64,000 bases of DNA from Phaeosaccion multiseriatum (taxonomy: Eukaryota > Protista > Ochrophyta, other classes). Made by a program: the position numbers and the translations under genes. Positions 27,112-56,283 of the stretch are shown here, piece after piece. Below the pieces are notes generated by a model. It ran no database searches, was not told the origin of the DNA, and saw only the letters and a program-made list of their open reading frames with translations. The stretch lies in NCBI GenBank assembly GCA_965112735.1, contig OZ218952.1, positions 4,154,001 through 4,218,000 of the forward strand, in the 5' to 3' direction. The number at the start of each line of letters is the position of its first letter. Position 1 is the stretch's first letter.

Positions 27112-29025
27112 ATGCTGATGATGCGAGTGATGTCGTTGAGGAGGGTGGTCAGGACCTGCATTGGCAGGAGGGCAAGACCGTCAAGAAGCACCGCGGCGCA
27201 ACGTAGGGTAGAGACTGCGCTTTCCCTTCCACAATGCCCACAATGGTCCTGCTACTCGAATGGGGGACGGCGGGGGGGTGACAAGGCGAGGCAGAAGCAG
27301 CTCATGAGGGAGATCCAAGCTCTGGGTGCAAGCAAGGACTGGAAGAGGGTCGCGCCTACTCTGGAACGCGCACGACGAGAGGGCCTGCAGCCCAATCTGT
27401 ACTGTCTCAATGCTGCCATATCCGCGATTGGGAAGTGCGGGCGGTGGAAGGGCGCTTTGAAACTTCTGGAAGAGATGAAGAAGAAGGGCATTGAGCCGAC
27501 TGTGGTCAGCTATAACTCAGTCATTACCGCTTGTGCCAATGGCAAGAACCACGTGGAGGCCTTGCGACTGCTCAGGAATATGAAGGCGGTAGGACTCAAG
27601 CCAGATGTTATCAGCTTCAATACCACCATTACTGCGTGTGCCAACGACAACAACGAAGTTGAGGCCCTGAAGCTCTTCAATGAGATGAGGGCGGTAGGAA
27701 TCGCTCCTAACGAGAGGACCTATAACACTATCATTACGGCGTGTGGCAGAGCTGGCGAAAGTACACAGGCCCTGAAGCTCTTCAAGGAGATGAAGGCGGT
27801 AGGACTCAATCCTGATGTGATCAGCTTTAGTGCAGCCATCACTGCATGTGGCAATGACAACAATCACGTGGAGGCCCTGAAGCTCTTCGAGGAGATGAAG
27901 GAGGCAGGACTCAGGCCAAATGTGATCAGCTACAGTGCAGCCATTACTGCATGTGGCAACGGCAACAACCACGTGGAGGCCCTGAAGCTCTTCAAGGAGA
28001 TGAAGGCGGTAGGACTGAAGCCTGATGTGATCAGCTACAGTGCAGCCATCACTGCATGTGGCAACAACAACAACCATGTGGAGGCGTTGAAGCTCCTGAG
28101 AGAGATGAAGGCGGTAGGACTCAAGCCTGATGTGATCAGCTTTAATGCTGCAATCACTGCATGTGGCAACGACAACAACCATGTGGAGGCCCTGAAGCTC
28201 TTCAAGGAGATGAGGGGGGTAGGACTCAACCCGGATGTGATCAGCTTCAATGCAGCCATCACTGCATGTGGCAAGGACAACAACCACGTGGAGGCCCTGA
28301 AGCTGCTCAGGGAGATGAATGAGGTAGGAATCAAGCCGGATGTGATCAGCTACAGTGCAGCCATTACGGCATGTGGCAACGAAAATAACCACATGGAGGC
28401 CCTGAAGCTGCTCAAGGAGATGAGGGGGGTTGGACTCAAACCAAATGTGATCAGCTTCAATGCAGCCATCACTGCATGCGGCAACGACAACAACCGCGTG
28501 GAGGCCCTGAAGCTGTTGAATGAGATGAAGGCGGTAGGGCTCAATCCTGATGTGATCAGCTACAGTGCAGCCATCACTGCGTGTGGCAACACGAATAACC
28601 ACGTGGAGGCCCTGAAGCTGTTGAATGAGATGAAAGCGGTAGGACTCAAGCCAGGTGTGATCAGCTACAGCTCAACCATTGATGCTCTGCAGGACGGTGG
28701 CGACGAGGAGGCTGCTGACGAAGTGTACGCAGGGGCCGTGTCGCAAGGGGTCTTCAGACACTGGAACAAACCGGGGCAGGAGATGGACTTGCACGACTTC
28801 ACCCAGGGAGTGAGCAAGGCAGCGCTTCGTCACGTGCTCTCAGTGGAGAAGGTGGAGGGTGAGATCCAAGTCATCACAAGCCGGGGCCGAGGCAGCGAGG
28901 ACGGCGTCAGCGTTCTCAAGCCCGTGGTGCTGGCCCATTTGCAAGAGAGGCCTGGCGTCGAAGTATGGGAAGATGAGCGCAACCCGGGGATGGTGGTGAT
29001 GCGGCTCGGTGGTAGTGCGAGGTAG
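27112..29025 (+). CDS. Intronless P-type pentatricopeptide repeat protein with C-terminal Smr domain (PPR-Smr A), probably mitochondrial
   Basis: About 14 tandem 35-aa motifs (VISY/F-N/S-AAITACGN..EALKL..EMK..GL.PD/N); Smr motifs MDLH and VITSRGRGS..LKP; Arg-rich presequence-like MLMMRVMSLRRVVRTCIGRRAR. Start placed at ATG 27112 because homology to paralog B begins just upstream. Confidence 0.93.
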   Translation: MLMMRVMSLRRVVRTCIGRRARPSRSTAAQRRVETALSLPQCPQWSCYSNGGRRGGDKARQKQLMREIQALGASKDWKRVAPTLERARREGLQPNLYCLNAAISAIGKCGRWKGALKLLEEMKKKGIEPTVVSYNSVITACANGKNHVEALRLLRNMKAVGLKPDVISFNTTITACANDNNEVEALKLFNEMRAVGIAPNERTYNTIITACGRAGESTQALKLFKEMKAVGLNPDVISFSAAITACGNDNNHVEALKLFEEMKEAGLRPNVISYSAAITACGNGNNHVEALKLFKEMKAVGLKPDVISYSAAITACGNNNNHVEALKLLREMKAVGLKPDVISFNAAITACGNDNNHVEALKLFKEMRGVGLNPDVISFNAAITACGKDNNHVEALKLLREMNEVGIKPDVISYSAAITACGNENNHMEALKLLKEMRGVGLKPNVISFNAAITACGNDNNRVEALKLLNEMKAVGLNPDVISYSAAITACGNTNNHVEALKLLNEMKAVGLKPGVISYSSTIDALQDGGDEEAADEVYAGAVSQGVFRHWNKPGQEMDLHDFTQGVSKAALRHVLSVEKVEGEIQVITSRGRGSEDGVSVLKPVVLAHLQERPGVEVWEDERNPGMVVMRLGGSAR

Positions 29026-29668
29026 TTAGACTGGACAAGACGGCAGGGCGTCAAAGGGCCGGGGAAGGTCTCAACCAGGGTTTGATTCACGCCCTTATTT
29101 GTTTTTTCTTTTATTTACACGCTTTGCTCGCAGGCAAGTGAGTAATATATGGAGACCAAAGGCTCTTTGAACTCTAAGACCTTGTTGGCGCCCGATGCCC
29201 AAGTCGACCCCACCGCAGAGGCTGGGACATCTGAGACATGGCTTGCGGCCCAAGACCCCCCCCCAAACAACAGAATCGTCTACTCTCCGTACCCCGTCCC
29301 ATACCAACTCTATCCGCAACAACAACAACCAACCAGCCAACCAACCTCGCACGTGATCTGTCTCGCAAACACCCCTCTGTGCTGCAGCACATACACACAC
29401 ATATATATGTAAACACATATATACATACACATGTCTCTGCTTTTCAAACACAACTTGAACCCCTCTCCCGCAAAACTGCTTATGAACAGTGTAAAAAGCG
29501 TTTTCTCCACTCCCGTCCTTGGCTCCACTTCCCCTCCCCCCTCCCCCCCCACCTCCCCTCCGCCTGCCTCACGGCCGACGTTACATGGCTATGGCCGTAG
29601 CTGTGTGACTGTGTGGCATGAGCTTCGGCAGCCAGACATGCTACCAAGCCCCATGCAGCAGAGCTAAG

Positions 29669-32600
29669 CTATACCAGCTCCCAGCAGTGCACACGCATCG
29701 GGCCTCTTCTCCTGTTGACCTTGCCCTCCGCCAACAACTTGCAGAGGTTCTGCTCCACGTTGTAGTGTGCCGTCAAGAACAGGGGAGGCGCCAGATACCC
29801 ATACACCTGCCATGTGATCTGCACCGAGGACAGCAGCGGGACGGGCTTGACCCCTTCGCCATCCCGTACCACGTGATTTAATTCATCCTCGACGAGGGGG
29901 CGGCCTCCCATCGCTTCCATGATCTGCCCCTCCCTTTGCGAACGGTGGGTAAGATACTCCTCCACCTGAGTGGAGTGGAGTGGAGTGGAGTGGAATGGAA
30001 GGACGCAGGGGCAGGCGGAGGTAAGCAAGCAAGGAAGAAGGGGCCACCAAAATAGACACTTTTGGTGAGAAAAGCAAAAAGAAACCCCCCCTTCCCCCCG
30101 TTCTCGTACCTGCAATAGCGGGTCATACACCACGGGCCCATGCCCCGGATAGAGCGCTTTCAATCCCTCGGGCCCTCCACACAGCTCCTTCACCTTCCTG
30201 AGGGAGGCAATGTAGTCGGCGTAGTGCTCGAAGCAAGAGCTGCCGCAGCCCAGAATGAGGTCGCCGCAAAGGAGTGCCTGTAGGGTAGAAAGGCGCAGGG
30301 CAGGGTGGAGGTGTATGGGCAGAGCAGGGCAGGGTGGAGGTGTGTGGGCAGAGCAGGGTAGGGCAGAGGTGTATGGGCAGGGCGGGGCGGGGAGTATGGG
30401 CAGGGCAGGGCAGGGCAGAGGCATATGAGCAGAGCAGGGCAGGGCAGGGTGGAGGGCGAGGCAGAGTGAATGGTGCAGGTAGTGTCAGTCGGTGGTGTTA
30501 TTGGCATGTGCAAGGAAAGCCAGTGTGCTTTGGGGAGGGGTGCATTTCGTGCGTGCGTGCGTCTACCTTGGCATTAAATCAACCATTTGGCTGCACATTC
30601 CTCTCTCTCTTCTTCATGGGCTCCACCCTCCTCCCCGACCATGTCCTCTCCTCCCCTCCCCTTCCTCTTCCTCCTCTCTTCCTCCCGCCTCCACCACCCT
30701 CACGCCACCCAAGCAGCCTCCTAACTAACTCACCCTGTCGTCCACCAGAAGGAAGCAGCAGTGATCAGAAGTGTGGCCGGGAGTAAAGATAGCCTTGAGT
30801 GTGCACCCTTCGCACTCGAATTCCTGCCCGTTTGTTATGGGTGTAAAGTCGTAGGGCTCCTCGCGATTGGAGTCAGCCTGGGATGGACAGCAGAGAAGGG
30901 GGGGGGGGGTATGGGGGTGAGGGGGGAGGGAGAGAGCGTGAAGGGAAGACAGACAGATGGACAGACACACACACAGAGAGAGAGGTAAAAGGGGGGATGG
31001 TGGGAGGGATAGAAGAGAGCGAGAAATGGCGCCAAGGAAAATGGATGTAGGAAGGGAAGGTTAACTCTCATGGTGGGGCTGTGAGGAAGGCGAAGACACG
31101 AGGATGGAATGGAGGGGAAGGGCAGTTATGGAAGCGGCTGGACCCGCCAACGTGCGCTATTTACTTCTCTTCTCCAACCACCCAAACCCCCTTTTTCTCA
31201 TCACTCACCTCGCCACGAACGAACTCACCCACCCCTCACCCACCCACCCACTCACTCACCTACCCACCCACACACTCACTCCCTCACTCCCCTCCCTCAC
31301 TTACAAACTCACTCAACTCACCCTGCAGTTCATGTAGTCATTCACTCCCCTACCCACCCACCCACCCACCCACCCACCCACCCACCTTCTTGAAAATAGG
31401 GATGTCTGGGAAGAGTGAGAGGATGTGTTGGATGCCTCCCGTGTGATCGAAGTGGTGGTGGGACAGCACAATTGCACGTATTTCCCTGCACCCCACCTCC
31501 TTCATCACGTCGAACAGCAGCCTCGCATAATCTGTGCGGTCATCGAGACGACCGAGGGAGGGAGGGAGGGAGGGAGGGAGGGAGGGAGGGAGGGAGGGAG
31601 GGAGGGAGGGAGGGAGGGAGGGATGGACGGGAGGGCGAGAGAGGGAGGGAGGGGTGCGAGCATTAGGGGTTTGTGCTGCCGGTCACACATAGACGCCTAG
31701 TGAGGGACTCCTCCTCCTCCCCCTCCTCCTCCTCCTCCTCCTCCTCCTCCTCCTCCTCCTCACCTCTCTTCCCCTCTCCGGTGTCCACTAGGATGCGAGT
31801 GTGCCCCTGCCCCACCAGATAGGTGTTCGTGCCCGTCAGAGTGTGAAGGCCTGGGTTCAAGCCTTGAGGAAGCAGGAGCAGAGCCGAGTGCAGGCAATAC
31901 AAAGCGCAAGGGAAGGTAGGTGAGACAGTGGGGGTGGGTGGGACAATGGCGGTACAGTGCCGTGTGTATAGGTGGGTAGATTGGGATAAGAGGCGGCAGG
32001 GAAAGATGCTTGTAGGGAGTATGACCGATGACCGGGAGACTTGATGGGTAGGGAGGGGGGGGGTAGTGTGGGACATAGAAGGGGGATCAACAGAAGGGCT
32101 CGGCTCTGTCGCACTGAGTGGGAGGTGGGTGCGTGAGCGGGGCTCTCTCCCCGAGAGAAAAAAACACGGGTCAACAGCAGCAAGCAGGCGCAAGCAGCAG
32201 AGTCGACACCCGTCCTTTCTATACTCCGTCTTACCGAGGAGCCTGACACAGTTCTGGCCGAGTCTCTCCCACCGCTCCACTGCGCGGACGATTGGGTCAG
32301 CAGGGGATGATGTTATGGAGCCAGTACATGTAGTGGGTCAGTGCGTGAGGGGGAGTGAGTGAGTTGAGTAAAAGTGCGAAGAAAAAGAACTTAAAAAATG
32401 TGTCCGGCAATATAGGGCTAGAGGAAAGAAGAAAGGTGGAGTGGTAAAAGGAAAGGGACGTGGGGAGGGAGTCCGTAATCAAAACAAAAAGTTAAAGCCA
32501 CTTCACTTTTTACGCTCTTCACCTGTCGGCATCCCTGGTGGGGGCTTTCCCCGATCGAAGCGCTTCAGGAATCGATGCCAGGTCGAATCCGTCCTCAGCT

Positions 32601-32778
32601 TCCTTCCTAAGTAAGAGAGGGCTGCACTGATGACTGCGAATAGGCCCAGCAAAGTACATGACCACATCTCGTTCTTAGTGAAGGGCTCCTCCGGGTCCTG
32701 CGGGTCCAGGGGCTCCTTCTCAGCTTGGGCTTCGACGCGCCGGCGTAACCCCCTGCGTTCCGTCCTGTGTTCACTCAT
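29669..32778 (-). CDS. LACTB2: LACTB2-like metallo-beta-lactamase-fold endoribonuclease with N-terminal hydrophobic segment
   Basis: Spliced motifs GLNPGLHTLTGTNTYLVG..ILVDTGEG, SHHHFDHTGG (HxHxDH), TPGHTSDHCCF, LLCGDLILGCGSS, LYPGHGP, EYLTHRSQREGQI and a winged-helix tail. First exon 32778-~32523 splices in phase (MPT-V-ERWERLG). Confidence 0.85.
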
Positions 32779-33218
32779 GCCTCTACACTGCGCATCCGAT
32801 GGGGACCACCTTCTGGGAAGAGGGGAAGGGGCAGCAGCAGCAGCAGCAGCAGGGAAGGTGGGGGATGCCAGAGTCGCAGAGGGGGGGGCAGTACAAAAAG
32901 TGAGGTCAGCAAGAAGGAGCAGAGGCAGCAAGAGGGCCAAGAGAGAGAGGCGGATGAGAAGGAGGCAGCGTTGACAGATGAGCAGGGAGCTACCGTGCAG
33001 AAGAAGGACAGGGACACATTGCGTAAGAGAGACAGAGGAACAGCAGTACCGTGCCTTAGAGAGGAAGAGGAAGCCAGACCAGAGAGGCAGGTGGTAAGGA
33101 AGGGTAAGGACGTTAGGACAGGAAATCGGTTGAAATCAAGTATTAAGTCAGCGATTTCTCTGCCCGGCCGATGCCGGCCGCCCCCCCCCTTCCCACACAG
33201 GAGGAGAAGTGAGTTGCA

Positions 33219-36200
33219 ATGAATCCGCCGATGGCGCCGCCACCTGGGAAGATGCCCAGCAAGGGTGGAGGTATGCCTCCTCCTCCCCCAGCTGCTCTCT
33301 CTAACGGGGGGCGATCGGCGTCTCCTCCCCGACCAAGCATGCCCCCCCCCCCCCGCAATCGAAGTATCCGAGGCAGTGCTGGCGGTGATAAAGAAGCTGA
33401 CGGGGAGGAGAAGAGCGACAGAATCGTCAAGCCATTGACGGAGCCGCCAGAAAAAGAAGAAGCAGGGCTGGCGCCCCCCCGGCCACCAACCCTTGTCGGC
33501 GGCAAGTATCGCGTTCCGGACTGGGCTGGGCCTCCCCGTGCAGACCTTCCCTTTCGCTTTGAGGTGCTCAAGGGGGGGATCATCTTGGACGGCGTAGAGC
33601 TCAACGACACCAACAAGGACGGAGGGACGTATTTGATTGGGCGGCAGCAGGGGAAGGTGGACCTGCACATGGAGCACCCCAGTCTGTCCCGACAACATGC
33701 CGTGCTGCAGTTCAATCAGGAGGGCCTTCCTTCTCTCATCGACCTCCACAGCACTCATGGGACACGAGTCAACAAGGAGGTCCGTACGCAACAAGCAAAT
33801 GAGAGGGCTTCGACGAAAAGCAAAGTGGAGGGCTTCAATGCCAATGCCAACACCTTGCACTGCTCTGACAAGTACTCTGACCCCGCGGCTTAAGCTCCTT
33901 CACGCCTCTAACCCCCTCTACCCCCCCCCCCTCCTCCTCCTCCTCCTCCTCCTCCTCCTCCGCCTCCTTCTCTTCTTCTGCTGTGACGAATAGCGCCTCG
34001 CCGGTGGAGTGTGGCGGCAGCTGAATGTAGGCGATGTGCTTAAGTTCGGCGACAGTACACGCCTGTATATCCTGCAGGGACCGGAGGCCCTCCAGCCGGC
34101 CGAGTACGAGAGCGACCACCTACGTAAGATGCGAGAGAGGGCAGAGGCCCTGGCCGAAAGGCGGAGAGAGAGGAGAGAAGCAGCAGGACTAGGCCGAGGA
34201 GGAGAAGGAGAGAGAGGGGGGGGAGGAGGAGGAGGAGGAGGAGAAGGAGAGGGGTCTAACCAGGCAGAAGACCAAGGAGCATCTTGGGGCTTCGGAGAAG
34301 ACGCGGTGAACGAGGAGGACGAGGACGATGGCGAGGAGGACGACGAGGAAGAGGAGCTGCCTGAATACCTCAAGGGTCTCAAAACGAGCGGCCTTCAGGT
34401 ACACATGGATGTACATGGTCTGTGGCCATTGCTCTGCCATTGCGTCAACCTCTCCTGTTTGGCCCCCTTTCCTCTCTCTGTTCCCTACTGTTACCCCCTC
34501 CCCATCCTTCCTCTTCCTAGCAACTTGTGCTCAGCCGTGCCTTTCCCTCCCACTCAACGCACCCCCCCCCCCCCCGCTCTTCATTCTTCATGCTTCATGC
34601 TTCACCTCCCTCCTCCCCGCTTCCAACAAAGGCGGATAAGGCGAGGGACACAGCCCTTGCCGTGACCGCGGAGGAAGTGAGCGAAAAGGATATGAAGAAG
34701 ATGGAGAAGCTTCAAAAGAAGATCCAAAAGATTGAGAATCTGTACACTGAGATGGAGAGAATACAGGCACGTACATTGGTGTCGCAACCTGCGGAGGGGG
34801 GGGGGCGGGTGCAAGGGTGCAAGGCCATGAGGTGCCGTGAAGTGCCATTTGTATGTAGGCACGGGCAGAGTACTGCAACCGCTTGCTTTCAAGCACTCGG
34901 GACGGAACCACGGAACCTCTTACTTCCTGCTATTCTTCTTCTCGGGAAGGTGTTCTTTACTTGTGCACACGACATACGTTACAGAATCCGCTGTTTGTGC
35001 CCGATTTGACGAGGTTTTGAAGCTATGGAGTCTGATAAAGAGTCTTTCTGCCACGCTTCGCTTCGCGCCCCTCTCTGCCCTGCCCCATTGCTCTCACCTC
35101 CCCTTAACGGACTTTTGCCACAGAACAAAGACAACGGTCAAGGCGGTCTCACCCCGGGTCAAGCTCTCCAAGTGGAGCGCAACGAGCAGCGCATTACAGA
35201 GCTGCGCAGTCAGATCGCAGACATGGAGGAGGGCCTCAAGAGCAAGAACAAGCAGCGAGTGGAGCAGAGAGACAAGCAGCAGAAGGAGATGGAGACCCTA
35301 GAGGAGAGAAAGAGGAGGCGGGAGGAGGAAGGCGAGGACGGTGATGACGTCGGAGATGAGTTCTTTGATCGCACTGGTACAAAAGAGTTTGGTGGTGCAG
35401 GTGGTGGGGGAGAGAATGGCCGCGGCTCGGGCTGGGGGAAGCGGCGTAGCAAGGCGGAGTTGTTGGCGGAGAGAAAGGCAAGGAGGTTCGGAGGAGGCAA
35501 AGGGAGTCACCGTGGGAGTGGGGATGGAGGGGGGGGAGGAGGTGGGGCGTTGGGCAGTGCGAAGGAGAAGGGGGGCGCTCTCTCACACCAAGACCTCGTT
35601 GCTCTCCTGGAGAAGGCCAACAAGCAGCTCAGGTATGGTTCACTCAGTCACTTAGTCACCCAATCTCTCAATCAACAGTCACTCAGTCACCCAGTCTCTC
35701 AATCACACAGTCACTCAGTCACTCAGTCACTCCGTCACACAGTCACTCAGTCACTCAATCACAGAGTCACACAGTCACTCAGTCACTCAATCACAGAGTC
35801 ACACAGTCACTCAGTCACTCAATCACAGAGTCACACAGTCACTCAGTCACTCAATCACACAGTCACACAGTCACTCAGTCACTCAATCACAGACTCACGC
35901 AGTCACTCAGTCACTCAGTCACTCAATCACACAGAAACACAGTCACAGTCACACATTTGGTTTCCACACACTTCATTTGCGCCCAGACCCAAGCAACCTC
36001 CTCCTCACCCCCCCATGCGATCTTAGAGTGTCTCTCTTCACCCCCCCATGTGATCTGAAAGCGCCCCTCTCTCTCTGACACACTCTCTCTATGTTTGTCC
36101 ATGTATGCCACTCTCACACTCATACATGCACATACACACACACACAAACGCCTCCTTCGCCCCTCAACAGCGTGACCCGTAAGTCCCTAGCCTCGGTGGA

Positions 36201-37564
36201 GGAGAACAGGCTCAAGCTGGGAGCAGGAGGCACCGCTACACCTACTGCTGCTGCTGCTGCTGCTGCTGCGGACCCTCTGGACGCTTTTATGATGTCCAAC
36301 AGGAAGGAGAATGTCGAGGTCGAGAAGAAGGTGAGATTGACGAGACGGATAATGCAGAGGTGTAGAAGAGTGTCGGGAGACCTGCCATACTTTGAAGCAG
36401 GTGTCATCCGCCTGTGATTGACCATCCATCAGGGACAGGTGTATGCTCTCCTAAGCTGACACACACAGATACACATACACATAATACACACACGTCTCTT
36501 ATCGACCTCGTCCTGCCTCTCATCGACATCAAACATGCAAACCCTTCTCTTTCCCCTTTCCTTCTTTCGTTCCTCCCTTCCTCCCTTCCTCTGTCTCTCC
36601 CTCTCTCCCACCGCAGCTGCTGTCCGAGAAGGAAGCTGCTCAGATGAAGGAAGTGGCCCGCTTGGGGGCGCTCGTCAAGATGACACGATCCGCCCTGCCA
36701 GACCTTGCCCCTCCGACCGCCAAGGCCCCACCGGCGGCTACAGCGGTAGCAGACAGAGAAGGTGGTGGTGGGGTTGGCGACGATGATGGGATAGCCCGTA
36801 CGGAGGAGGAGGACAGCAGTGTGCGTGTGGCTTCACAGAGGAAGCTCAAGTCACCAGCACCACAGGCACAGGCAAAGGTCGAGAAGGGGCCGCGTCGGCC
36901 GCCGTCGGATCATCCGCAGCAGAGAGAGAATGTAACGGTAGAAGGGGAGCAGGAGAGTGAGGGGCAAGGGCGTGAGGCAGCAGCAGCAGTAGGAGCAGGA
37001 GCAGCAGCAGGAGGAGGAGGAGGAGGAGGAGGGGAGGGGGGGGGAGTTGAAGAAGCGGGGAAAAAGCGGCCGAGGCCTGGTGCGGCTGCTGCAAGCAGAG
37101 GCTTGAGCATGACAGACGCTCTACGGCAGTTCCAGCGGCAGACGCAGAGAGACGAGAACGAAGACAGCGGCGAGGAGAATAACGGTGTCGAGGGGCAGGA
37201 GGAGGACGATGATAACGAGAGAGGCGAAGGCAGTCACGAGGAGGGTGGCGGAAGGCACCGACAGAGGAAGAGAGGGCGACAGACAAGGGAGCGAGCCCCT
37301 GCGGCTGCGTCTGCTCCTCTCGAGTTTAGGCCAATGAAGGGCCCTGCGTTAGGACCGTCGGGCGCAGACTTGGGGCCCCAATCGTCCGCGGGGCGAGGAG
37401 GAGGAGGAGGAGGAGGAGGAGGTGGGGGGGGGGGGATGGGCCAGAGGAGGAAGGGAGGGCATGCAGGGGCTGGGGAATTGGAGGATGGAACGGCCGATTG
37501 GGTACCTCCGAAGAACCAGGACGGCACGGGCAGAACGAGTCTCAATGACAAGTTTGGGTATTGA
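33219..37564 (+). CDS. SLC4A1AP: Kanadaptin (FHA-domain nuclear protein, SLC4A1AP-like)
   Basis: YRVPDWAGPP..FEVLKGGII..IGR..HPSLSRQHAVLQF..DLHSTHGTRVN..VGDVLKFGDSTRLYILQGP; QGGLTPGQ..RNEQRI; DEFFDRT; DPLDAFM; C-terminal WVPPKNQDGTGRTSLNDKFGY*. Confidence 0.9.
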
Positions 37565-37811
37565 GTGTCAGGACCCACAGACAGACACACATATGCACTC
37601 ATGGTATTGAGTGTCATGCACGAGTGTGAGGGAGAGAGAGAGAGGCTACTCGTGGAGCGAGGGACAAAGAAGGCGCAGTGGCTCCTTGTCAGCGTATTTC
37701 GCCTCAGCGACGTTGAAGGTGGGGATTGCGCCTCCCGGACCAGGCGGTAGGTCGAGTCTCGAAGCAGCACGTCTTCAAATAATGTTAATTCTCTTGCTTT
37801 TCTTTTTTAAA

Positions 37812-38067: not shown

Positions 38068-38180
38068 CAATAATAATAAATTGAAAGTCGGGCGGACTGG
38101 TACGTATCGGTTAGGCCCAAGGAATGGTATCGAAAGGTCAGAAGCCGCCCTTGCGTCTCTGCTCCTCTGCCGGCCAAATA

Positions 38181-41053: not shown

Positions 41054-41095
<42 letters not shown>

Positions 41096-45430: not shown

Positions 45431-45859
45431 ATTACTTAGAGTCCGGACCTGTTCCCATTCCTTCCCATTAGCTCCTCTTCCTGCTCGCAGTAGCCCCCAT
45501 TTTGTTCGTACTCAAGTCTGAGGAATGCGAGGTGTCGGTGACCGAGCGCTGCGCTGGGGCCCTGGACCTTGGCACGAACGGTGGCACGAACGGAAGCAGC
45601 AGCAGCAGCAGCAGCAGGAGGAGGAGGAGGAGGAAGGAGGCAAGGAGCACTGGTGGCGAATGTCATCCTCCCTCCCAGAGAAAGCACAGTATTCGTGTAC
45701 AATTTTTTAATTTTAAAAAAAAATGATAAGGGTCTTTGAGTCGCCTCCGCCAGCAAGGGCTTTGCGAGGTTGTTTCTAGAAGCACAGTTGACACCGCGTG
45801 GACCTGGTGAGGCCCAAACCCCAACCAGGAGAAGCAGAGTTGAAACCGTGTGGACCAGA

Positions 45860-46693
45860 TCAGGCCTTGGTAAACACGAGGGTGGAGGCCTGGCCGTGCA
45901 CGTCAAGAAGAGGCTGGCAGTTCTCCTTGTACCAGTCCTGGAACTTGCCCTCCTCGGCAAGCTTGGTGACGTCCTCCACGGCCTTTTGCACCTCTTGTTT
46001 GGGGGAGAGAGCCCAGTCGCTGATCTGGTTGCGTCCCTCTTCGCTCACCATAAACACCGGGTCCGTAAAGTCTTCCAACCTGATAAGGGTCTCCTTGTGC
46101 AAGTAGGCGATCTTCTTGGTGAGCTCAGTACCCACGGCCATCTCGCAGAGGCGTTCGTTGCTGACAAGGCGGGCGTGCATGTTCTCGAACGCCACGGGAA
46201 GAAACTTGAGGTACCAGTAGGTCTGCAGCTGGTCGGGCTCGCAGTGGTTGATGATGACCTGCCCGCCCTTCTTCACTACGCGTGCCGCCTCCTGGACAAA
46301 CTTTGAAATGCCCTCGTCTCCAAAGTGGTGCAGCGCCATGGTGCAGGTAACGGCGGTGAAGGTTTCGTCTGGGAACGGGAGGTCCTGTGCAAAACCTTTC
46401 TGAACTTCGATGTTCGTCAGACCACCCTTCTCAATCTTCTGCTTGAGCTGTGCAATCATGCCCTCATTCAGCTCAACGCATTGCACGCTCGCGCATATCT
46501 TGGAGACGGGAATGGTGTAGTTGCCAGTGCCGCACGCGACGTCCAGAATGTGGTGCTCCCCTGCGAAAGGAGAGTCTGCGAGTGCCGATTTAATATCCTC
46601 CACGCCTACCGGCGTACGAGTGCGGTCGTATACCTTCGACACGGTGTTGTAGTCTTCATACTGCGGCCTCACCACTTCTGTACCCACTACCAT
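45860..46693 (-). CDS. Intronless class I SAM-dependent methyltransferase (Methyltransf_11/UbiE-like)
   Basis: 277-aa ORF from MVVGTEV; motif I ILDVACGTGN, VELNEGM, AQDLPFPDETFTAV..MALHH, EAARVVKKGG. Confidence 0.9.
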   Translation of the reverse strand: MVVGTEVVRPQYEDYNTVSKVYDRTRTPVGVEDIKSALADSPFAGEHHILDVACGTGNYTIPVSKICASVQCVELNEGMIAQLKQKIEKGGLTNIEVQKGFAQDLPFPDETFTAVTCTMALHHFGDEGISKFVQEAARVVKKGGQVIINHCEPDQLQTYWYLKFLPVAFENMHARLVSNERLCEMAVGTELTKKIAYLHKETLIRLEDFTDPVFMVSEEGRNQISDWALSPKQEVQKAVEDVTKLAEEGKFQDWYKENCQPLLDVHGQASTLVFTKA

Positions 46694-46874
46694 GTTGTGC
46701 TTGCTTGTATAAATGATCTGAACGAAAGGCCAAGTTGCTGGACCAACTGGTGGGAAAAGGGGCCAAAAAAATTCGCAAAAAAAGAAGAACAAAAAAAAAA
46801 AAATGGAGAATTGGGTCAAGGAGAAAGTGTGGGTGGTGCGCTGCGAGTGATTGAGAGCTATTGCCGAAGCTTTT

Positions 46875-47202
46875 CGGCTCGCTCCAGGCGGGGTTTCTCT
46901 GGCTCCTGGCTTCTGGGCCGTAGCTCCCTCCTGGCTTCGGGCTTCTGGCTTCTCAGGCTGGGAGAGAAAAAAAAATTAAAGGGGGGGGGGGAGGGGCTCG
47001 TTTTACTGTCCTGGGCTGCTGGCTTCTGAAGCCATCGGCTCCCAGCAGGGCTTCTCTGGCCCCCCGATAAGCAGAAGCCTGAGGCGGCCTGCGGCCGAAA
47101 GCAAGAAGTCCGGGGCTGGCCTGCGGCCAGAAGCCTGCATAATCTTCTCCCCCCCCCCCTGAGCCCCCCTGAGAAGCCTGGCATCAGCCAGGCAGGGGTC
47201 GA
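46875..47202. repeat. Composite inverted/direct copies of the GGCTTCT/AGAAGCC dispersed repeat, ending in a caggggtcga terminus
   Basis: Matches 5220-5378 in both orientations; many ggcttct then agaagcc motifs; the right end resembles the MITE family terminus. Confidence 0.6.
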
Positions 47203-47326
47203 GGAGTTGGCTGGTGCTAGCTACTAAGGACCTGGTACCGAGCGCCGAGCTGATGAGGAGCGAGGGCTCTCCCTCACCTAACAGCTTCTACTCGAGATAT
47301 TTTCTGTCAGTGACCTACCTTCCATT

Positions 47327-47570
47327 CCCTGGACAAGGTTATCTGATTACTGATTACGGCCGGCGCAGCCGGCCTGATTACTGATTATGGCGCCAGCCGG
47401 ACCTGATTACTGATTATGGCCGGCGCCAGCCGGGTCTGATCATGATTGGCGCCAGCCGGCCTGATTACTGATTATGACCGGCGCTAGCCGGCCTGATTAC
47501 TGATTATTGGCGCCGGCCGGCCTGATTACTGATTATGGCCGGCGCACACTGTAACCTTGTCCAGGGTCGA
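47327..47570. mobile_element. MITE with internal ~30-bp tandem array, TCGRCCCCTG-related family
   Basis: Perfect 15-bp inverted repeat ccctggacaaggtta (47327-47341) / taaccttgtccaggg (47552-47566) followed by tcga; about 7 units of ctgattactgattatggccggcgccagccggc. Left tip eroded. Confidence 0.8.
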
Positions 47571-48120
47571 TGCCAGGAGGGCAGCAAAGTCGAGTAAAGC
47601 AGAATTTAGAGCTACATCTTCCCATTGACTTACTGTACTGTACAGATGGCACGTGTAGCACCACTTCTCCTTCCTCGTTACTTTTAGACAATCATAGATG
47701 GCACCGAAGGGTGTAATATACAAACATCTCTCTCTCTCCCTCCCTCTGTCGCTCCCTCTTGGGATGGGATCTCTTAATCGCTTGGATCTCCTCTGCTCCC
47801 GTTTTCTCACCTTCCAGCCGTAGAAGTTTTTCTTCTATCGCAGCGGAATGAGCGGGTTGGATCCTGCCAGCGGGGCCAAACAAGTGAGTGGAGTGTTTGA
47901 TCATCTTGCGACGGCTGCTTTGCGTTTTGAGCCTTGCCCCACCACCACCAAAACTACTCGTCCTGTAGCACCTCGCCATGCCATCGTTGCGTAACCCTGA
48001 CCTGCTCCTCACCTCTTTCTTTATAAGGAGGGACTCATACCGCCGCTGCAAGAGGATAGGGGGAGGGGAGGCGCGCAGGGGGGAACGGATGAGGGAATCG
48101 CAGCAGCAGCAGCGAAAGCG

Positions 48121-48151
<31 letters not shown>

Positions 48152-48291
48152 GAGGAGGAGTAGGAGGAGGAGGAGGAGGAGGAGGAGGAGGAGGAGGAGG
48201 AGGAGGAGGAGGAGGAGGAGGAGGAGGAGGAGGAGGTGGTGGTGGTGTGCGTGGTGGCCTCACCAGCAATCGCCGTAGGTACAGGTCGAGA

Positions 48292-48654
48292 ATGCCGCTA
48301 GAGTCCACCATTGACGCACAGGCGCCTCAGGTAAGAGGGGAAAAGGCGCAAAAGGCCACGCATGGGAGGGGACTCTCGCCCGCCAAGGGTTACTTCAGAA
48401 TAGTGCATCCATTGGGGGGGGGGGGGGGGATGAGTCCCCGATCCATAGGTGTAATGAAGCACCCCTTCCCTATTCCCTCCCACCCTCGTCCCCTCTCTCC
48501 ATCTCCCCTATCCACTGCCATCCCCCTTAGGTGAAGCTGGACATCGTGCGCATGATCGTGCAGTATCTCAACGGGGAGCGCTTCTTCACCAGTGCGATGG
48601 TGCTGCAGGACGAGGTCGGCATGAGGCAGGCAGAGCAGCAGGTAGGTGTGTGTG

Positions 48655-48689
<35 letters not shown>

Positions 48690-49607
48690 GCGGGCGCTGC
48701 GTTGTGGCCCCTTGCCAGGCATGTCGCCCCTTGGTAAGGGAAGGGGTCTACTGAGTATTGGGGGACTCTTACATATGCGTCTCCTGCATTTATCCTCGTT
48801 GCCCCAGGGCAGGGCAGGGCAGGGTAGGGCCCATATCTCACGAATAGACCAAACATCTTCGCTTTGCTTTTTTTGTCTTGCACATTGTATTATACTGCAC
48901 TACAGTCTCGCCGGCAGCAGAGCAAACGTTTCAGAAAAGCTATTCTGGAGGGCGACTGGGAACAGGTGAGCCCCCAGCCTTCCTTCCCTGCTGTACCCCT
49001 ACTTCGAGTGCTTAGTGTCCGGACCTGCTCTTATTAGCACCCTGATATCCGCCCCTCTCCCCTCCCCTCCCCTCCCCTCCTCACTACAACTACAACTGCA
49101 ACCTCTCGCTGTGTGCGTGTTGTTTTTAGGCTTCGCAGCTGGTGACTAAGACTCTGCCCCGTAGCCTGCAGAAGAGCTACAAGTAAGCTTCGAGATGATG
49201 ACACCTCTCCCTGCCCCGTCTACCCTTACCTCCGACCCTAACCTCTACCCTTGTCCCTACCGTACCCATCCACATGCGCCTCCCTCCCTCCAACCCTCCA
49301 ATCCAACCCAAACTATCCAACCCAACCCAACCCAACCCAACCCAACCCAACCCAACCCAACCCAATCCAACCTAACCCAACTCAACCCAGATACACCCTG
49401 TACCGCCAGGAGTTCCTGGAACTTATTGAGCGACAAGAGTCCCAGAAGGCCTTCGCCTTCCTCAACCGCTACCTCAAGCCAATGGAAGCAACATGCTCTT
49501 CCAACCCGGAGGAGTTTCGCTCGCTCTGCTACCTGCTTACCTGCAAGACGGTGTCCTCCTCCGACTACTTTAGCAGGTGGGTGCGCCTCCTCCTCCTACT
49601 ACTACGC

Positions 49608-49686
<79 letters not shown>

Positions 49687-49736
49687 CACTGCTACTTCTA
49701 TTACTCATACTAGTACTACTACTACTACTACTATTA

Positions 49737-49775
<39 letters not shown>

Positions 49776-49795
49776 AACTTCTACTAAAACTACTG

Positions 49796-49828
<33 letters not shown>

Positions 49829-50291
49829 AAGCTTCTACTAAAACTACTGCTACTACTACCACCTAAGTGCAACTCGTTCCCTCTGTGCCTCCCTCTCCCC
49901 ACTCCCTAACGTGCATCCAACGGTCTGTCCATAATTCCTGCCTGTCTGCCTGCCTGCCTGCCTGCCGATCAGGTGGTCGGGTGTGATGGCGAGTCGCGAG
50001 GAGCTGGCAGAGGAGTGCTGTCGCGTCATCGAGATGGACCACCCCACCAGCATCAGCAGCGGTGGCAACAGCGCAGGCAGCAGCGGCACCACAAACGGAA
50101 GCAACAACAACAACACGAACGGACACAGCAGCAGCGGCAGTGGTAGTGGTGGTGTTGGCCGGCTGGAGCCCCACACGCAGGGCCAGGCAGCCAGCAATAC
50201 CCCCTTGCCGCCCAACCGCCTCCTTACACTGCTCGAGCAGGCGCTGGCCTACCAAATAGAGTTCAACAGGTGATTTTCCTTGGTACTGCTA

Positions 50292-50325
<34 letters not shown>

Positions 50326-53300
50326 GGCTTCTAATGCTGCCCTCGACGGTCGGCCCGATGTTCTCCGTGTGTCTCCGTGTGTCTCATCCCCTCTCTCTCT
50401 CCCCTCTCTTGTTCTCTGCTTCTCAACCCCCCCCTGCCCCACCGCCTCTCCCTGCTCCCCGGTCAGATATCACCCCAAGTTGGTACCCGTGGTTGGGTCC
50501 CTCGCCACAGACTTCCGCTGCGTGGCGGTACCCAACTGTGAGAGGGACTGCTTCGTGGTCAGCAGCAGAGGCGTGGAGACGATGGAGGAAGGGAGGCATC
50601 AGCAGCAGCAGCAGCAACATCAGCAGCAGCAGTTGGTGATACAACAGCAGTTGGTGACACAGCAAACTGGGGCGGCAACTGGAGGGCCTGTGGTAACTCT
50701 AGAGGAGATGGCAGCGGGAGGAGGGCAAGGAGGAGGCGGGGGCGCGCTCAAGTGCGTGGAGTGGGTGGGCGAGGAGGGGTACCTTCTGGCAGCGGGGGGC
50801 ATGGACGGTTACGTGCACTTTTGGACAGCCAATCCGGGAGTGGAGACCGGTCTAGATATTGAGGTGCGTCCATACTCTATCGGCCTGTATTTTATCGTGG
50901 ATGCTTGGATGTGGCCGGATGCGTGTGCCTGTGCGGATCACCGCGGAGCAGATCGGTCAGGCGGACGTGTGTGCGTTTGTGTGTGTGTGTGTGTGTGTGC
51001 GTGTGCGTGTACGTGTGCGTGTGCGTGTGCGTGTGTGTGTGTGTGTGTGCGTGGGCGTGTGTATGTGTGTGTGCATGTGCGTGTGCGTGTGTGTGGGCGT
51101 GGGCGTGTGCGTTGGCGTGTGCGCTGTCCTCATGCTCAAGCCTCTTCTCCCTCATCTCCCCTCTCCTCCCTCTCCCCCCTCATTGCCAATCGCTGCTCTC
51201 TCCCTCTCCCTTTCTTTCTCTCTCTCCCTCCCTCCGTCCCTCCCTCCCTCCCTCCCTCCCTCCCTCCCTCCCTCCCTGATGACTGAACAGGGCCGAGACC
51301 ACGAGTCCGGGCGTGTGAGTGCCCCCTGCCTGTCCCTGTGCTTCGGCAGCAAGGTGTGGGATGTGAGCTGCAACACCATGGGGGACAAGATCGCTGCAGG
51401 AGGAGCCGACGGAAGCGTCAAGGTCAGTCACTCTCTTCTCTCTCCTCTTCTGTCTTCTTCGTCCTGATGATTTCTCTCTCTCTCCGTTTCTCTCTCCTAC
51501 GCATCATCTAGAGGAGGCTCGTGCTGTCAGCAGTCAACCCTGCCCCACGTTCCTCAACCCTCAATCCTCCTCACAACTCCTTACATCCCTGCTTTCATGT
51601 CCCCTCTCTCCTCTGTGTTGGTGTTGTTGCTGTTGTCGTATATGCCATCCATCCATTGTCATCCATCCACTGCCATCCACCCCCTTGGCAGATCTGGTCT
51701 TTGCCCTCCTGCGCTTCCCTCGCGGAGACGGAGAGGGCCGGAGAGGACCCGTTAGCGGCGCTGAGGAGCCTGTCCTCCTCCTCCTCCACGCCGGCGGTCG
51801 GTGGTAGCAGCAGCGAGGCACAGGAGTTGGCAATACAGCAACAGGCGCCGCACACCAGGCACTTCCACCACGGGAATCAGGGTCAGGACGTTTACTGTGT
51901 TGCCTGGCACCCCTCGCAGGTACGTCAAGCTCTCTCTCTTGTCCCTCCCTCTCTCTTTGAATCTCTCTCCGTCTCTCTCACTTTCTCTCTCTCTCTCTCT
52001 GTGCCCCCACTCTCCCTCTCACACACACCTTTCCCTCCTCGTATGCATACAACCCAGCGCCAAGTGATTAGCGCAGGGAACGATCGTGCCGTGCGCATAT
52101 GGGATGTGGAGACCAGCCAGGAGCTCAAGGTAACGAATTGAAGGAGGAACGTGGGCAGCGCAGGGGGCCCTCAGAGGGCTCTCAGAGGGCTCTGAGGTTT
52201 CTGTGGTTGTCGTGCTTGTCCCCAACCTATTCTATTGTGTATTGTGCGTAGTGGAAGTGCTTTGAAACTACCAGTGGGGGCGGGGGGGAAAGGCTCATGC
52301 CCATCCCGAGTCATGACTCTCATCCCCATCCACTGCCATCCGCCGATGTCTCTCTTTCTCTCTCCCGACTACACACACATACACGCGCACACCCACACAC
52401 ACTTAGTCCTTCGTGAAGCACGACGGAAGTGTCCTGCACGTGGCGTCCAACAAGCACGGCAACTTGCTTGCCTCCGCCGCTAGAGACAGCACTATTCGGT
52501 AGGGAGGGGAGGGGGGGTGTGGAAGGCACAGCACCTTTCGGTAGAGAGGGGAGGGGAGGGGAGGGAGCGTGTTGAGCGTTGCCATCCGCGCATGTATGTA
52601 CCCTCCCTTTCTCTTGTCCATCTCTTTCTCTATCTGCCTCTCTCTTTTCGTGCATTTTGGTTCCAGCTGATGAGGCGCGTCATGCCCGCTCACAGCCACA
52701 CAATTCCCTGCCGCTGTTGCCTCTCCTCCTTTTCCTTCTCCTCCCCCCCCCCCCTCCTCCTCCTCCTGCTCCTCCTCCTCCTCCTCCCTCCCCTCCCCCG
52801 CCCCACCCCCCCCCCCCCAAAACTAGCTTCTGGGACATGCTGAGTGGTGTGTGCGTCAGCACCCTCTCCCACCCCCTCGGGGCCGTCCGCTCTGTGGCCT
52901 ACTCCCGAGACGGGCTGTACTTGCTCTCGAGCTGTAGGCACGGGGCTGCTCGTCTGTGGGACATGCGTATGCGGAGGGTGGTGCAGCGCTACAAGGTACA
53001 TGAGGCAGGGTAGAGGTATATCGGCACAGAAGTTGGTGATACAGGGCAGGGCAGAGCAGGGAAAGGCAGGGAAGGGTAGGTAGATGAGTCGGTCCGTCGG
53101 TCAGTCGGTCAATCACATCAGTCAATCACGTCTGCCGGTTATGACTCACTGTGGAAATGTGCCTCCCGTTTCCTCCTTTCCCCCTCCTTTGCCCTCCCGT
53201 TGCCCTCGTGTTTTCCAACACCCCCCGTGTGTGCATCTCTGCTGTGTATCTATACTCTCTGTATCTACTCTATCTACACGTGTATCTGACTGTGTATGTG

Positions 53301-53326
53301 TGTCTGACTGTCCGTGGGTGGGTGTG

Positions 53327-53360
<34 letters not shown>

Positions 53361-53808
53361 TGATTAGGGCCAGCTGAATACGTCGAGTTCCTTCCTGCGG
53401 GCGAACTTCGGAGGAGACGACGAGCTCGTGGTGGGGGGAAGCGACGATGGAGCCATCTGCGTGTGGGACACGTGAGTCAGTCAATCAGTCAGTCCAGAGA
53501 GAGAGATATAGCCCTACTCCCCCTCTGCTTAACCCCTCTCCCTCCCTGCTCCCCCCCTTGCTGGACCCTTTGCTTGACCCCTACCTACCCAACCCCAAAG
53601 GCGGAGTGGCGGTTTGCTGGAGCGTCTGCGTGGGCATGTGGGTGCGGCCTACCGAGGGGCGTGGAACGCTCCACAGGGGCTGTTGGCGTCGTGTTCGGAG
53701 GACGGAACGGTCCGCACATGGTGGTGGGAGGACGAGAGCGACGAGGGAGAGGATGGGAGGAGAAACAAGGAGGAGGGGGAGGAGGAGGGGGGGAGCGCCA
53801 GGACTTGA
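48292..53808 (+). CDS. LisH-CTLH-WD40 protein, WDR26/GID7-like (start uncertain)
   Basis: LisH DIVRMIVQYLNGERFFTSAMVLQDE; CTLH FRKAILEGDWE..YRQEFLELIE; LPPNRLLTLLEQALAYQ..SLATDFRC; WD repeats ending FLRANFGGDDELVVGGSDDGAICVWD and LRGHVG..WNAPQGLLASCSEDGTVRTW. Confidence 0.8.
49597..49860. repeat. (CTA)n intronic microsatellite; (CCCAA)n at 49315-49390
   Basis: Direct reading. Confidence 0.95.
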
Positions 53809-54375
53809 AAATAAAAATGAGAGGGTTTTGAACCCTTCCTCGCACTGACCGAGAGGGACTGACTCAGAGGGACTGAGTGAGAGGGGTTGGGTGCGGACGG
53901 ATCCGTGCGGTAGAGGAGGGGAGGCAATGCGACACAAAAGCCAGTGCTAGTGCCAGTGCTTGCCTCCCGTAGTGCAGTCTTTGCCTCCCCGAAGTGGCCA
54001 AGGGGGTGAGGTGTTACTAAATCAACAGTTTTCGACGCATATATATGAGTACTTAATTACATCACCCCCAAGAGTGTTGATATATCCCACCCACACCAAC
54101 CACGCCACGGTATCTCGCCTGCTCGACAGAGCTTCTCGGGCGTCGGGTAGGGGCAGCAGACACCACAGCTTCACCATCAGCAGCAGGGCTCTACTCACAC
54201 GGCGAGACAGACAGACAGACAGACAAGACGCGTCCCCGGTCCAGAAGCGGGCCCGAAAGGGTGGCCTGGCCAGCCATGATTCCTCCCGAGGGAAAATGAG
54301 CTACTCCCAGGAAATGCACAGACAGACAAGCCCCAGCCGCGACAGGATGGGAAGCCAAACACAACCCGGGTGTGT

Positions 54376-56283
54376 CTAATTCCCTCCACCGACCCGCATC
54401 ACCACCCTCCCCGGGTTGTGCTCATCTTCCCATACTTCGAGGCCCTGCCTCTCCTGCAAATAGGCCAGCACCACGGGCTTGAGAACGCTGACGCCGTCCT
54501 CGCTGCCTCGGCCCCGGCCTGTGATGACTTTGATCTCACCCTCCACCTTCTCCACTGAGAGCACGTGACGAAGCGCTGCCTTGCTCATTCCCTGGGTGAA
54601 TTCGTGCAAGTCCATCTTCCTCCCAGGTTCGAGCCAGTGTGTGAAGACCCCTTGCGACACGGCCTCAGAGTACACCTCGTCAGCAGCCTCCTCGTCGCCA
54701 CCGTCCTGCAAAGCGTCAACGGTAGCGCTGTAGGTGATCTGATTGGGGGCAAGTCCTTTGTCCTTCATCTCTTTGAAGAGCTTCAGGGCCTCCACGTGGT
54801 TGTTGCCGTTGCTACACGCAGTGATGGCTGCACTGTAGCTGATCACATCTGGCATGAGTCCTGCCGCCTCCATCTCTTTGAATAGCCTCAGGGCCTCCAC
54901 GTGGTTGTTGCCGTTGCCACATGCAGTAATGGCTGCGTTATAGCTGATCGCATTTGGCCTGAGCCCTATCGCCTTCATCTCGTTGAAGAGCCTCAGGGCC
55001 TCCAGGTGGTTGTTGTCGTTGCCGCATGCAGTGATGGCCGCACTATAGCTGATCACATTTGGTCGGAGTCCTACCACCTTCATCTCACTGAGGAGATTCA
55101 GGGCCTCCACGTGGTTGTTGTCGTTGCCACATGCAGTGATGGCTGCACTATAGCTGATCACATTTGGCCGGAGTCCTGTCGCCTTCATCTCGTTGAATAG
55201 CCTCAGGGCCTCCAGGTGGTTGTTGTCGTTGCCGCATGCAGTGATGGCCGCACTATAGCTGATCACATTTGGCGTGAGCCCTACCGCCTTCATCTCATTG
55301 AAGAGCTTCAGGGCCTCAATGTGGTTGTTGCCGTTGCCACATGCGGTGATGGCTGCATTGTAGCTGATCACACCAGGCTTGAGTCCTACCACCTTCATCT
55401 CATTGAAGAGCTTGAGGGCCTCCACGTGGTTGTTGCCGTTCCCACATGCAGTGATGGCTGCATTGAAGCTGATCACATTTGGCCTGAGTCCTACCGCCTT
55501 CATCTCCTTGAAGAGCTTCAGGGCCTCCACGTGGTTGTCGTTGCCGCATGCAGTGATGGCTGCACTAAAGCTGATCACATCAGGCTTGAGTCCAACCCCC
55601 TTCATCTCCTTGAAGAGCTTCAGGGCCTGTGTACTTTCGCCAGCTCTGCTACACGCCGTGATGATAGTGCTGTAGGTCCTCTCGTTAGGAGCGATTCCTA
55701 CCGCCCTCATCTCATTGAAGAGCTTCAGGGCCTCAACTTCGTTGTTGTCGTTGGCACACGCAGTAATAGCGGTATTGAAGCTGATAACATCTGGCTTGAG
55801 TCCTACCTCCTTCATATCCCTGAGCAGCCGCAAGGCCTCCACGTGGTTCTTGCCGTTGGCACAAGCTGTAATGACTGAGTTATAACTGATCACACTCGGC
55901 TCAAGGCCTTCCTTCTTCATCTCTTCCAGAAGTTTCAAAGCGCCCTTCCACCGCCCGCACTTCCCAATCGCGGAAATGGCGGCATTGAGACAGTACAGAT
56001 CGGGCTGCAGGCCCTCTCGCCGTGCGCGTTCCAGAGTAGGCGCGACCCTCTTCCAGTCCTTGCTTGCACCCAGAGCTTGGATCTCCCTCATGAGCTGCAT
56101 CTGCCTCGCCTTGTCGCCCCCCCGCCGTCCCCCATTCGAGTAGCAGGACCATTGTGGGCATTGTGGAAGGGAGAGCGCAGTCTCTACCCTACGTTGCGCC
56201 GCGGTGCTTCTTGACGGTCTTGCCCTCCTGCCAATGCAGGTCCTGACCACCCTCCTCAACGACATCACTCGCATCATCAGCAT
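54376..56283 (-). CDS. Intronless P-type PPR protein with C-terminal Smr domain (PPR-Smr B), probably mitochondrial
   Basis: Same N-terminus as A; about 14 PPR motifs (one of 34 aa); Smr motifs MDLH and canonical VITGRGRGS. Confidence 0.93.
   Translation of the reverse strand: MLMMRVMSLRRVVRTCIGRRARPSRSTAAQRRVETALSLPQCPQWSCYSNGGRRGGDKARQMQLMREIQALGASKDWKRVAPTLERARREGLQPDLYCLNAAISAIGKCGRWKGALKLLEEMKKEGLEPSVISYNSVITACANGKNHVEALRLLRDMKEVGLKPDVISFNTAITACANDNNEVEALKLFNEMRAVGIAPNERTYSTIITACSRAGESTQALKLFKEMKGVGLKPDVISFSAAITACGNDNHVEALKLFKEMKAVGLRPNVISFNAAITACGNGNNHVEALKLFNEMKVVGLKPGVISYNAAITACGNGNNHIEALKLFNEMKAVGLTPNVISYSAAITACGNDNNHLEALRLFNEMKATGLRPNVISYSAAITACGNDNNHVEALNLLSEMKVVGLRPNVISYSAAITACGNDNNHLEALRLFNEMKAIGLRPNAISYNAAITACGNGNNHVEALRLFKEMEAAGLMPDVISYSAAITACSNGNNHVEALKLFKEMKDKGLAPNQITYSATVDALQDGGDEEAADEVYSEAVSQGVFTHWLEPGRKMDLHEFTQGMSKAALRHVLSVEKVEGEIKVITGRGRGSEDGVSVLKPVVLAYLQERQGLEVWEDEHNPGRVVMRVGGGN

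Follow-up and report, generated by a model that had tools for sequence, protein, structure and literature searches.

Intronless PPR-SMR genes with near-uniform repeats in the alga Phaeosaccion multiseriatum: a probable multi-copy family

A stretch of 64,000 nucleotides (nt) from the stramenopile alga Phaeosaccion multiseriatum (GenBank assembly GCA_965112735.1, contig OZ218952.1, positions 4,154,001 to 4,218,000 of the forward strand; hereafter the window) contains two intact genes, A and B, and a truncated third copy, C. The intact genes code for PPR-SMR proteins, i.e., proteins with a tract of pentatricopeptide repeats (PPR) followed by a C-terminal Smr domain. Together the three copies, A and B being intact and C truncated and dead, probably represent a lineage-specific multi-copy family of intronless genes for organellar RNA-binding PPR-SMR proteins, which changes by gene conversion and repeat reshuffling. 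The family members analysed are these three copies, all located inside the window, and coordinates are given in window positions.

Gene structure, repeat tract and Smr tail

Gene A (27112–29025, forward strand) comprises 637 codons and a stop codon, and gene B (54376–56283, reverse strand) comprises 635 codons and a stop codon. Each product (637 and 635 amino acids, respectively) is translated from one uninterrupted open reading frame (ORF), and the two proteins share 85% identity and 92% similarity in a pairwise alignment with a single one-residue gap. The genes are placed in inverted orientation with a spacing of 25.4 kb. The Pfam profile PPR_2 matches both proteins (E 5.6e-125 for A and 2.5e-113 for B), in 12 stretches each. 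An initial annotation, made from the letters of the window, had described an inverted pair of intronless PPR-Smr paralogues about 25 kb apart, equal in repeat count and differing in their specificity residues. All of these features were recovered: the ORFs are single and carry a P-type PPR tract with an Smr fold, 14 units are present in each protein, and two intact copies and one truncated copy lie within 31 kb. The truncated copy C (24935–25309) was absent from that description.

Both proteins were split into 35-residue units starting at residue 61. The PPR tract of A (14 units; 27292–28761, forward strand) has a 105-nt tandem period with 10.4 copies and 81% matches, and that of B (14 units; 54637–56103, reverse strand) has a 105-nt period with 10.8 copies. 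The periods were called by Tandem Repeats Finder, with about 80% matches in both genes. Unit 6 of B is one codon short; the deletion (55540–55545 region) affects the turn between helices a and b (GNDN-H versus GNDNNH) and leaves a unit of 34 residues. Units 6–13 of A (27817–28656, forward strand) are homogenised, with 81–90% nt identity among units in the unit identity matrix. Across the 16 homogenised units of both genes (A6–13 and B6–13) repeat positions 9–13 read T-A-C-G-N, with G12 and N13 found in 15 of the 16 and the remaining residues invariant or nearly so.

Positions 5 and 35 of each repeat are the code positions. In units 2–13 their residue pairs are NT, ND, NN, ND, SN, SD, SD, ND, ND, SN, ND and SG in A, and NS, ND, NN, SD, SN, NG, NN, SN, SN, SN, ND and SN in B, exactly as first listed. 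The two codes differ in 7 of the 12 units (2, 5, 7, 8, 9, 10 and 13). Each of them comes down to one transition; the codons involved are AAT/AGT for position 5 and, for position 35, GAT/AAT/GGT or ACT/AGT. When the land-plant code is applied, the tracts of A and B are predicted to recognise different RNAs, with the 5' third in common and the 3' two-thirds different. The predicted motifs are roughly xUYUAGGUUAUx for A and CUYGAxYAAAUA for B, which by chance would be expected about 0.1–0.2 times in a genome of 40 kb.

The Smr domain of B (54379–54636, reverse strand) has complete DLH, TGRG and NPGR motifs. In the Smr domain of A (28762–29022, forward strand) DLH is kept (D559, H561), TGxG is changed to TSRG (S590, codon 28879–28881) and NPGR to NPGM. 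When the tail of B was queried against 1.84 billion representative proteins with HMMER, 144 relatives were found at E ≤ 0.001, and 27 relatives were aligned with A, B and C (30 tails). In the numbering of this alignment D44, the Asp of DLH, shows no variation. The His of DLH (H46), the Gly pair of TGxG (G75 and G77) and the Asn and Gly of the C-terminal NPGR (N109 and G111) are each conserved in at least 90% of the tails. Pfam Smr is matched individually by 22 of the 30 aligned tails. The profile built from these tails aligns along its full length with pTAC2/PAP2, a plant PPR-SMR protein (E 1e-18), and it also finds the Smr domain of N4BP2 from human (E 1e-8). The AlphaFold model of the B tail has a mean pLDDT of 91.5, and its top Foldseek matches are PAP2 (TM 0.70–0.75), N4BP2, YdaL and the MutS2 Smr domain. 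Judged by these profile and model comparisons, the assignment of A and B to the PPR-SMR proteins, with a genuine Smr fold, is solid.

Between A and B the Smr region differs by 17–24 replacements, one of which falls on an invariant motif glycine: the first Gly of TGxG, replaced by Ser in A, is Gly in 27 of the 27 relatives. When the changes in the tail are polarised with copy C, A has 7 derived replacements (including Gly to Ser in TGxG and Arg to Met in NPGR) and B has 4. The ratio of replacement to synonymous changes is 20:5 in the Smr region versus 13:14 in the N-terminal part (p = 0.017). Due to the lost glycine of TGxG, the nuclease reading is weakest for A.

It is quite possible, although not the outcome we would favour, that A and B are non-catalytic PPR-SMR proteins. 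They would then act as RNA stabilisers, as splicing or translation factors, or as parts of a ribosome or polymerase complex, with a structural or docking Smr tail as in pTAC2/PAP2, PPR53 and PPR-SMR1. Among solved structures the tail comes closest to PAP2/pTAC2, which belongs to the plastid RNA polymerase as a structural subunit; the ratio of nonsynonymous to synonymous substitution rates (dN/dS) in the Smr core is about 1, and an invariant glycine is missing from A. According to reviews, most plant PPR-SMR proteins have roles in RNA stabilisation, splicing, translation or the polymerase complex, and SOT1 is the one member for which endonuclease activity is reported, cautiously, as something that it "may have". 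Against this reading, B and the majority of the 27 relatives retain the DxH, TGxG and NPGR motifs, a conservation which argues that the site is important in the family as a whole.

Divergence of copies A and B

The synonymous divergence (dS) between A and B forms a mosaic. It is 0.046 in the presequence, 0.13 in units 2–7, 0.39 in units 8–13, 0.28 in the non-repeated unit 14 with the linker and 0.048 in the Smr core. In the unit matrix, units 2–7 and 14 are reciprocal best matches between A and B (88–98% nt identity). The positional pairs 8–13 are 81–89% identical and no closer than random unit pairs (86%). Inside B, unit 9 matches unit 11 at 96% nt identity, and unit 6 is 91–93% identical to units 9, 10 and 11. 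By these identities units 8–13 are not positional orthologues between the two genes, and hence 4 of the 7 code differences sit in non-orthologous repeats.

The homologous block covers 27085–29012 of A (forward strand) and 56310–54386 of B, with 90% nt identity. It extends from 27 nt 5' of the ATG to about 4 codons before the stop codon of A, and the flanks are unrelated. The sole similarity between the flanks consists of CTC/CTT-type simple repeats (in-frame Leu/Ser/Glu runs), which are found near both genes at 26253–26307, 26835–26891, 52738–52803 and 53724–53795. The dS mosaic, together with homology that ends at the borders of the coding sequence (CDS), points to gene conversion and repeat reshuffling. 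The simplest account of the sequences would be that A and B are older paralogues in which gene conversion has rewritten the coding regions again and again, the latest events affecting the two ends, with intragenic exchange of units in mid-gene and birth-and-death turnover of copies. Retroposition was considered as the source of the CDS-only homology and rejected: the homology ends within the last codons and not in an untranslated region (UTR) or poly(A), and the 3' UTR common to B and C is absent from A.

Across all 16 units, backbone similarity has no predictive value for the code state (permutation p = 0.58), so short conversion tracts or point toggles must act too. The explanation of the code differences solely by inheritance of whole units was rejected, being unsupported overall by this permutation result, although B6, B9, B10 and B11 resemble unit copies. 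The uncoupling of backbone and code is compatible with code residues held against homogenisation, which falls short of proof.

Over units 2–13, A and B differ by 73 substitutions in addition to the one-codon deletion in unit 6 of B, and 62 of the 73 lie outside positions 5 and 35. The initial annotation had called the presequence, scaffold and Smr domain almost identical. This holds for the presequence, the protein sequence of which is the same in both genes, but it is an overstatement for the scaffold and passes over the replacements in the Smr domain. Counted by the number of units in which A and B differ, position 5 changes in 5 units and position 35 in 6, while positions 25 and 29 change in 8 each, position 33 in 7 and position 30 in 6; positions 4, 14, 22, 24 and 28 differ in 4 units each.

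Diversification concentrated at positions 5 and 35 had also been proposed. In units 1–7 the code positions are enriched in replacements in comparison with the average site (5 of 14 versus 16 of 230, Fisher p = 0.0035), and the p value rises to 0.053 without unit 7. In the same orthologous units, position 29 is changed most (4 times), followed by position 35 (3 times) and position 5 (2 times). Nonsynonymous diversity (piN) was scaled to the mean synonymous diversity (mean piS = 0.284) across the 16 homogenised units. For the code positions the scaled values are 0.66 (position 5) and 1.05 (position 35), versus 1.34 at position 14, 1.31 at position 25, 1.21 at position 29, 1.29 at position 30 and 1.65 at position 33; 21 of the 35 repeat positions are invariant or nearly so. 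Since positions 14, 25, 29, 30 and 33 vary as much or more, the code residues are not singled out. The site test that had been proposed, approximated from the two genes and the units inside them, gives an excess over the average site and no excess over these five other positions. The code residues are part of some 7–10 unconstrained positions on a strongly constrained scaffold, and positive selection at positions 5 and 35 is not shown by the data on A and B. Between A and B, dN/dS is 0.23 over codons 1–250 and 0.38 over units 6–13. These values mean that the PPR tract is under purifying selection and that the genes are functional now or were so recently.

A restorer-of-fertility-like arms race is unlikely. 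In such a race, diversifying selection at the recognition residues would allow the proteins to bind and cut new selfish or harmful mitochondrial transcripts. Clustered paralogues with a dead copy do fit birth-and-death evolution, the code positions are enriched in the orthologous units, and the code is uncoupled from the backbone, as if the backbone were homogenised and the code kept distinct. The mitochondrial-like N-terminus described below fits too, and the same genomic habits are found in plant restorer-of-fertility-like (RFL) genes (PMC5138203). Searches of two very large collections of proteins and of metagenome contigs gave no protein more than 50% identical to A or B, although this may reflect only poor sampling of the lineage. 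Against the race stand the scaled diversities at positions 5 and 35, which do not rise appreciably above 1 and are exceeded at five other positions, the higher number of changes at position 29 and the dependence of the enrichment on unit 7. Moreover, the hypervariability of position 2 in plant RFLs (PMC5138203) has no counterpart in the units of A and B, where this position is invariant, and TGxG is broken in copy A.

Copy C is a 5'-truncated relic (24935–25592, forward strand), in which a 124-codon ORF (24935–25309) with the Smr tail alone is followed by 3' flank. Its Smr motifs are altered, with DLR in place of DLH and RPGRG, with an insertion, in place of TGRG. The tblastn identity of C to A residues 537–634 is 53%, and its segment 25010–25592 is 75% identical to B 54678–54122 by blastn. 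The 3' UTR common to B and C, which A does not have, is 85–95% identical, and the coding part of C is 55–85% identical to that of B. Copy C may be a relic without function or else an Smr-like ORF that stands by itself. A putative decayed single PPR unit (22083–22166, forward strand), weak and frame-shifted, was detected by nhmmer with the unit profile (E 1.3e-4) and by translation, and it may be the last trace of the repeat array of copy C.

N-terminal extension, relatives and known systems

Codons 1–60 of A (27112–27291, forward strand) encode an Arg-rich, mitochondrial-presequence-like extension, which in comparison with B has 0 amino acid differences and 2 synonymous differences. Residues 1–33, shared by both proteins, contain 10 Arg or Lys, 0 Asp or Glu and hydrophobic runs of at most 4 residues. 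In composition the N-terminus agrees with the presequence proposed earlier. Import into the secondary plastids of stramenopiles needs a signal peptide. The N-terminus of A and B is without a hydrophobic core and hence without the signal peptide needed for this route. By composition it is typical of a mitochondrial presequence, and mitochondrial targeting is plausible.

In whole-protein searches the best relatives are dinoflagellate and stramenopile proteins (best identity 47%, with partial coverage), and plant proteins are 23–27% identical. The search with the B tail among the 1.84 billion representatives gave a closest identity of about 47% and nothing at E ≤ 1e-30, and the best match in a scan of metagenome contigs for relatives of A and B was 32% identical. 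The nearest named relatives of the tail belong to the stramenopiles Chrysoparadoxa australica and Aureoumbra lagunensis. PPR-SMR proteins have been recorded in heterokonts, brown algae and diatoms (PMC3858433) and in dinoflagellates (PMC12787238).

Repeat uniformity, expressed as identity at a lag of 35 residues, is 0.77 and 0.70 in the pair A and B versus a median of 0.21 for 187 database relatives. Among public proteins with Smr tails, it is 0.78 in P0127, 0.72 in P0030 and 0.64 in P0014. These three are environmental or transcriptome proteins (P0030 is encoded at locus L010:10001-11695), and so uniform-repeat PPR-SMR proteins recur in other protists. P0030 was considered as a further case of clustered paralogues and dropped, since no neighbour at a distance of up to 10 kb was annotated as a PPR gene. 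A different arrangement is found in P0006 (eukprot GEMP01002953), a public protein derived from a transcript, where two successive PPR and Smr modules (residues ~270–480 and ~560–998) form one chain; it may be a tandem fusion of, or a read-through across, two adjacent PPR-SMR genes.

The plant PPR-SMR proteins (pTAC2/PAP2, SOT1/PPR53, GUN1, SVR7 and the mitochondrial PPR-SMR1) share with A and B the order of the parts: the P-type tract comes first, directly followed by a final, degenerate PPR and then the Smr domain. The fold and the DxH and TGxG motifs are also the same, and the tail profile spans the whole tail of PAP2. The plant genes, however, are few and old, with stable orthologues and heterogeneous repeats, whereas the algal genes are multi-copy and recombining, and their repeats are 81–90% identical at the DNA level.

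The angiosperm RFL proteins resemble A and B in being intronless P-class genes that form clusters with dead copies, differ at code residues and have a probably mitochondrial N-terminus (PMC5138203). In contrast to A and B, they belong to one angiosperm clade and do not contain an Smr domain. What marks the RFLs, an omega above 1 that is concentrated in the code residues, is not shown for A and B, where much of the change is reshuffling of units. The initial annotation had placed the genes in an RFL-like family. This assignment does not survive the extra Smr domain and the nearest relatives, which are stramenopile and dinoflagellate proteins, plant proteins being at most 27% identical. From sequence comparison, A and B are not RFL proteins by descent or architecture.

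Runs of near-identical repeats of the SACEK type have been described in algae of the CASH lineage (PMC12787238). The SACEK-type PPR proteins of these algae and of dinoflagellates have near-identical 35-residue VISY(N/S)AAI-AC units, and some of them carry an Smr tail. They differ from A and B in having SACEK and then GGQW where A and B have TACGN at positions 9–13 and then (D/G)NNH, and overall they are at most 45% identical to A and B. The repeats of A and B are a TACGN variant of the SACEK-type unit and are related to it in type only.

The designer PPR proteins (dPPR and cPPR; PDB 5i9f and 5orq) are similar to A and B in their uniform scaffold, the base preference of which depends mainly on residues 5 and 35, and are strongly matched by the PPR part of the tail profile. 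A and B, by contrast, are natural proteins with about 7 further variable positions, an Smr tail and a targeting extension.

The window also contains an ORF (45863–46819, reverse strand) in which a class-I S-adenosylmethionine methyltransferase domain is clearly recognised (Methyltransf_25, E 4e-24). A collection of 5.8 billion protein clusters yielded just one relative of this ORF, a distant one with 27% identity.

Proposed mode of action and significance

From the architecture described above we infer the following mode of action for A and B. The Arg-rich extension most likely imports each protein into mitochondria. There, the 13 code-bearing P-type repeats would be expected to occupy a single-stranded stretch of about 12 nt in an organellar RNA, with the N-terminal repeat facing the 5' base. 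The Smr domain of B, in which all motifs of the family are kept, could cleave the RNA on the 3' side of the site occupied by the repeats, or else act as a docking module. The Smr domain of A has lost an invariant glycine and evolves faster, and A is more likely to be a binder only.

At the gene level, the orthologous units 2–7 would change by single-transition toggles at code and surface residues, and the near-identical 105-bp units 8–13 would be replaced or converted unit by unit. Conversion between the paralogues would hold the two genes close to identity at the 5' end and in the Smr core.

Several points weigh against the reading of these genes as a family of organellar RNA-binding PPR-SMR proteins changing by conversion. 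The PPR code has been validated for land plants alone and is applied here to an alga. As single sequences (C-terminal 110–120 residues), A and B score 18.9 and 22.9 bits with Pfam Smr, below the cut-off of 25.7. In the Smr region, dN/dS between A and B is about 1.2–1.3, with few changes behind this value. Both genes may have an unseen upstream exon, which could code e.g. for a signal peptide. Finally, the dS contrast between unit 14 with the linker (0.28) and the Smr core (0.048) is based on about 9 synonymous differences.

Further-reaching than the preferred reading, and slightly more doubtful than the arms race as such, is a functional analogue of RFL built on the PPR-SMR architecture. It would be a large nuclear family of mitochondrial sequence-specific RNA endonucleases. 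Their code would be rewritten by recombination of 105-bp units and by toggles under changing organellar transcripts, with conversion keeping the import signal and the nuclease alike.

Least probable is the explanation that one or both copies are recent non-functional duplicates in decay and the code differences neutral noise: the adjoining dead copy, the lost motif glycine and 7 derived tail replacements of A (versus 4 in B) and the one-codon deletion in unit 6 of B agree with it, but neither of the two ORFs, each about 636 codons long, is interrupted, the PPR tract has a dN/dS of 0.23–0.38 and the presequence has no replacements.

The PPR-SMR architecture itself is known, and in plants it is represented by a handful of old, stable genes; a multi-copy, homogenised and recombining PPR-SMR family would be a novel form of it. 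If the preferred reading is true, near-uniform repeats with base-specifying residues that differ between neighbouring genes would be a natural counterpart of the designer PPR proteins, and if cleavage also occurs, they would constitute a natural programmable RNA cutter. The logic of RFL-type co-evolution between nucleus and organelle would then extend beyond the flowering plants. The pair A and B mainly documents how such genes change: conversion acts on the ends, repeats are reshuffled in mid-gene, and one of the copies has lost a nuclease motif.

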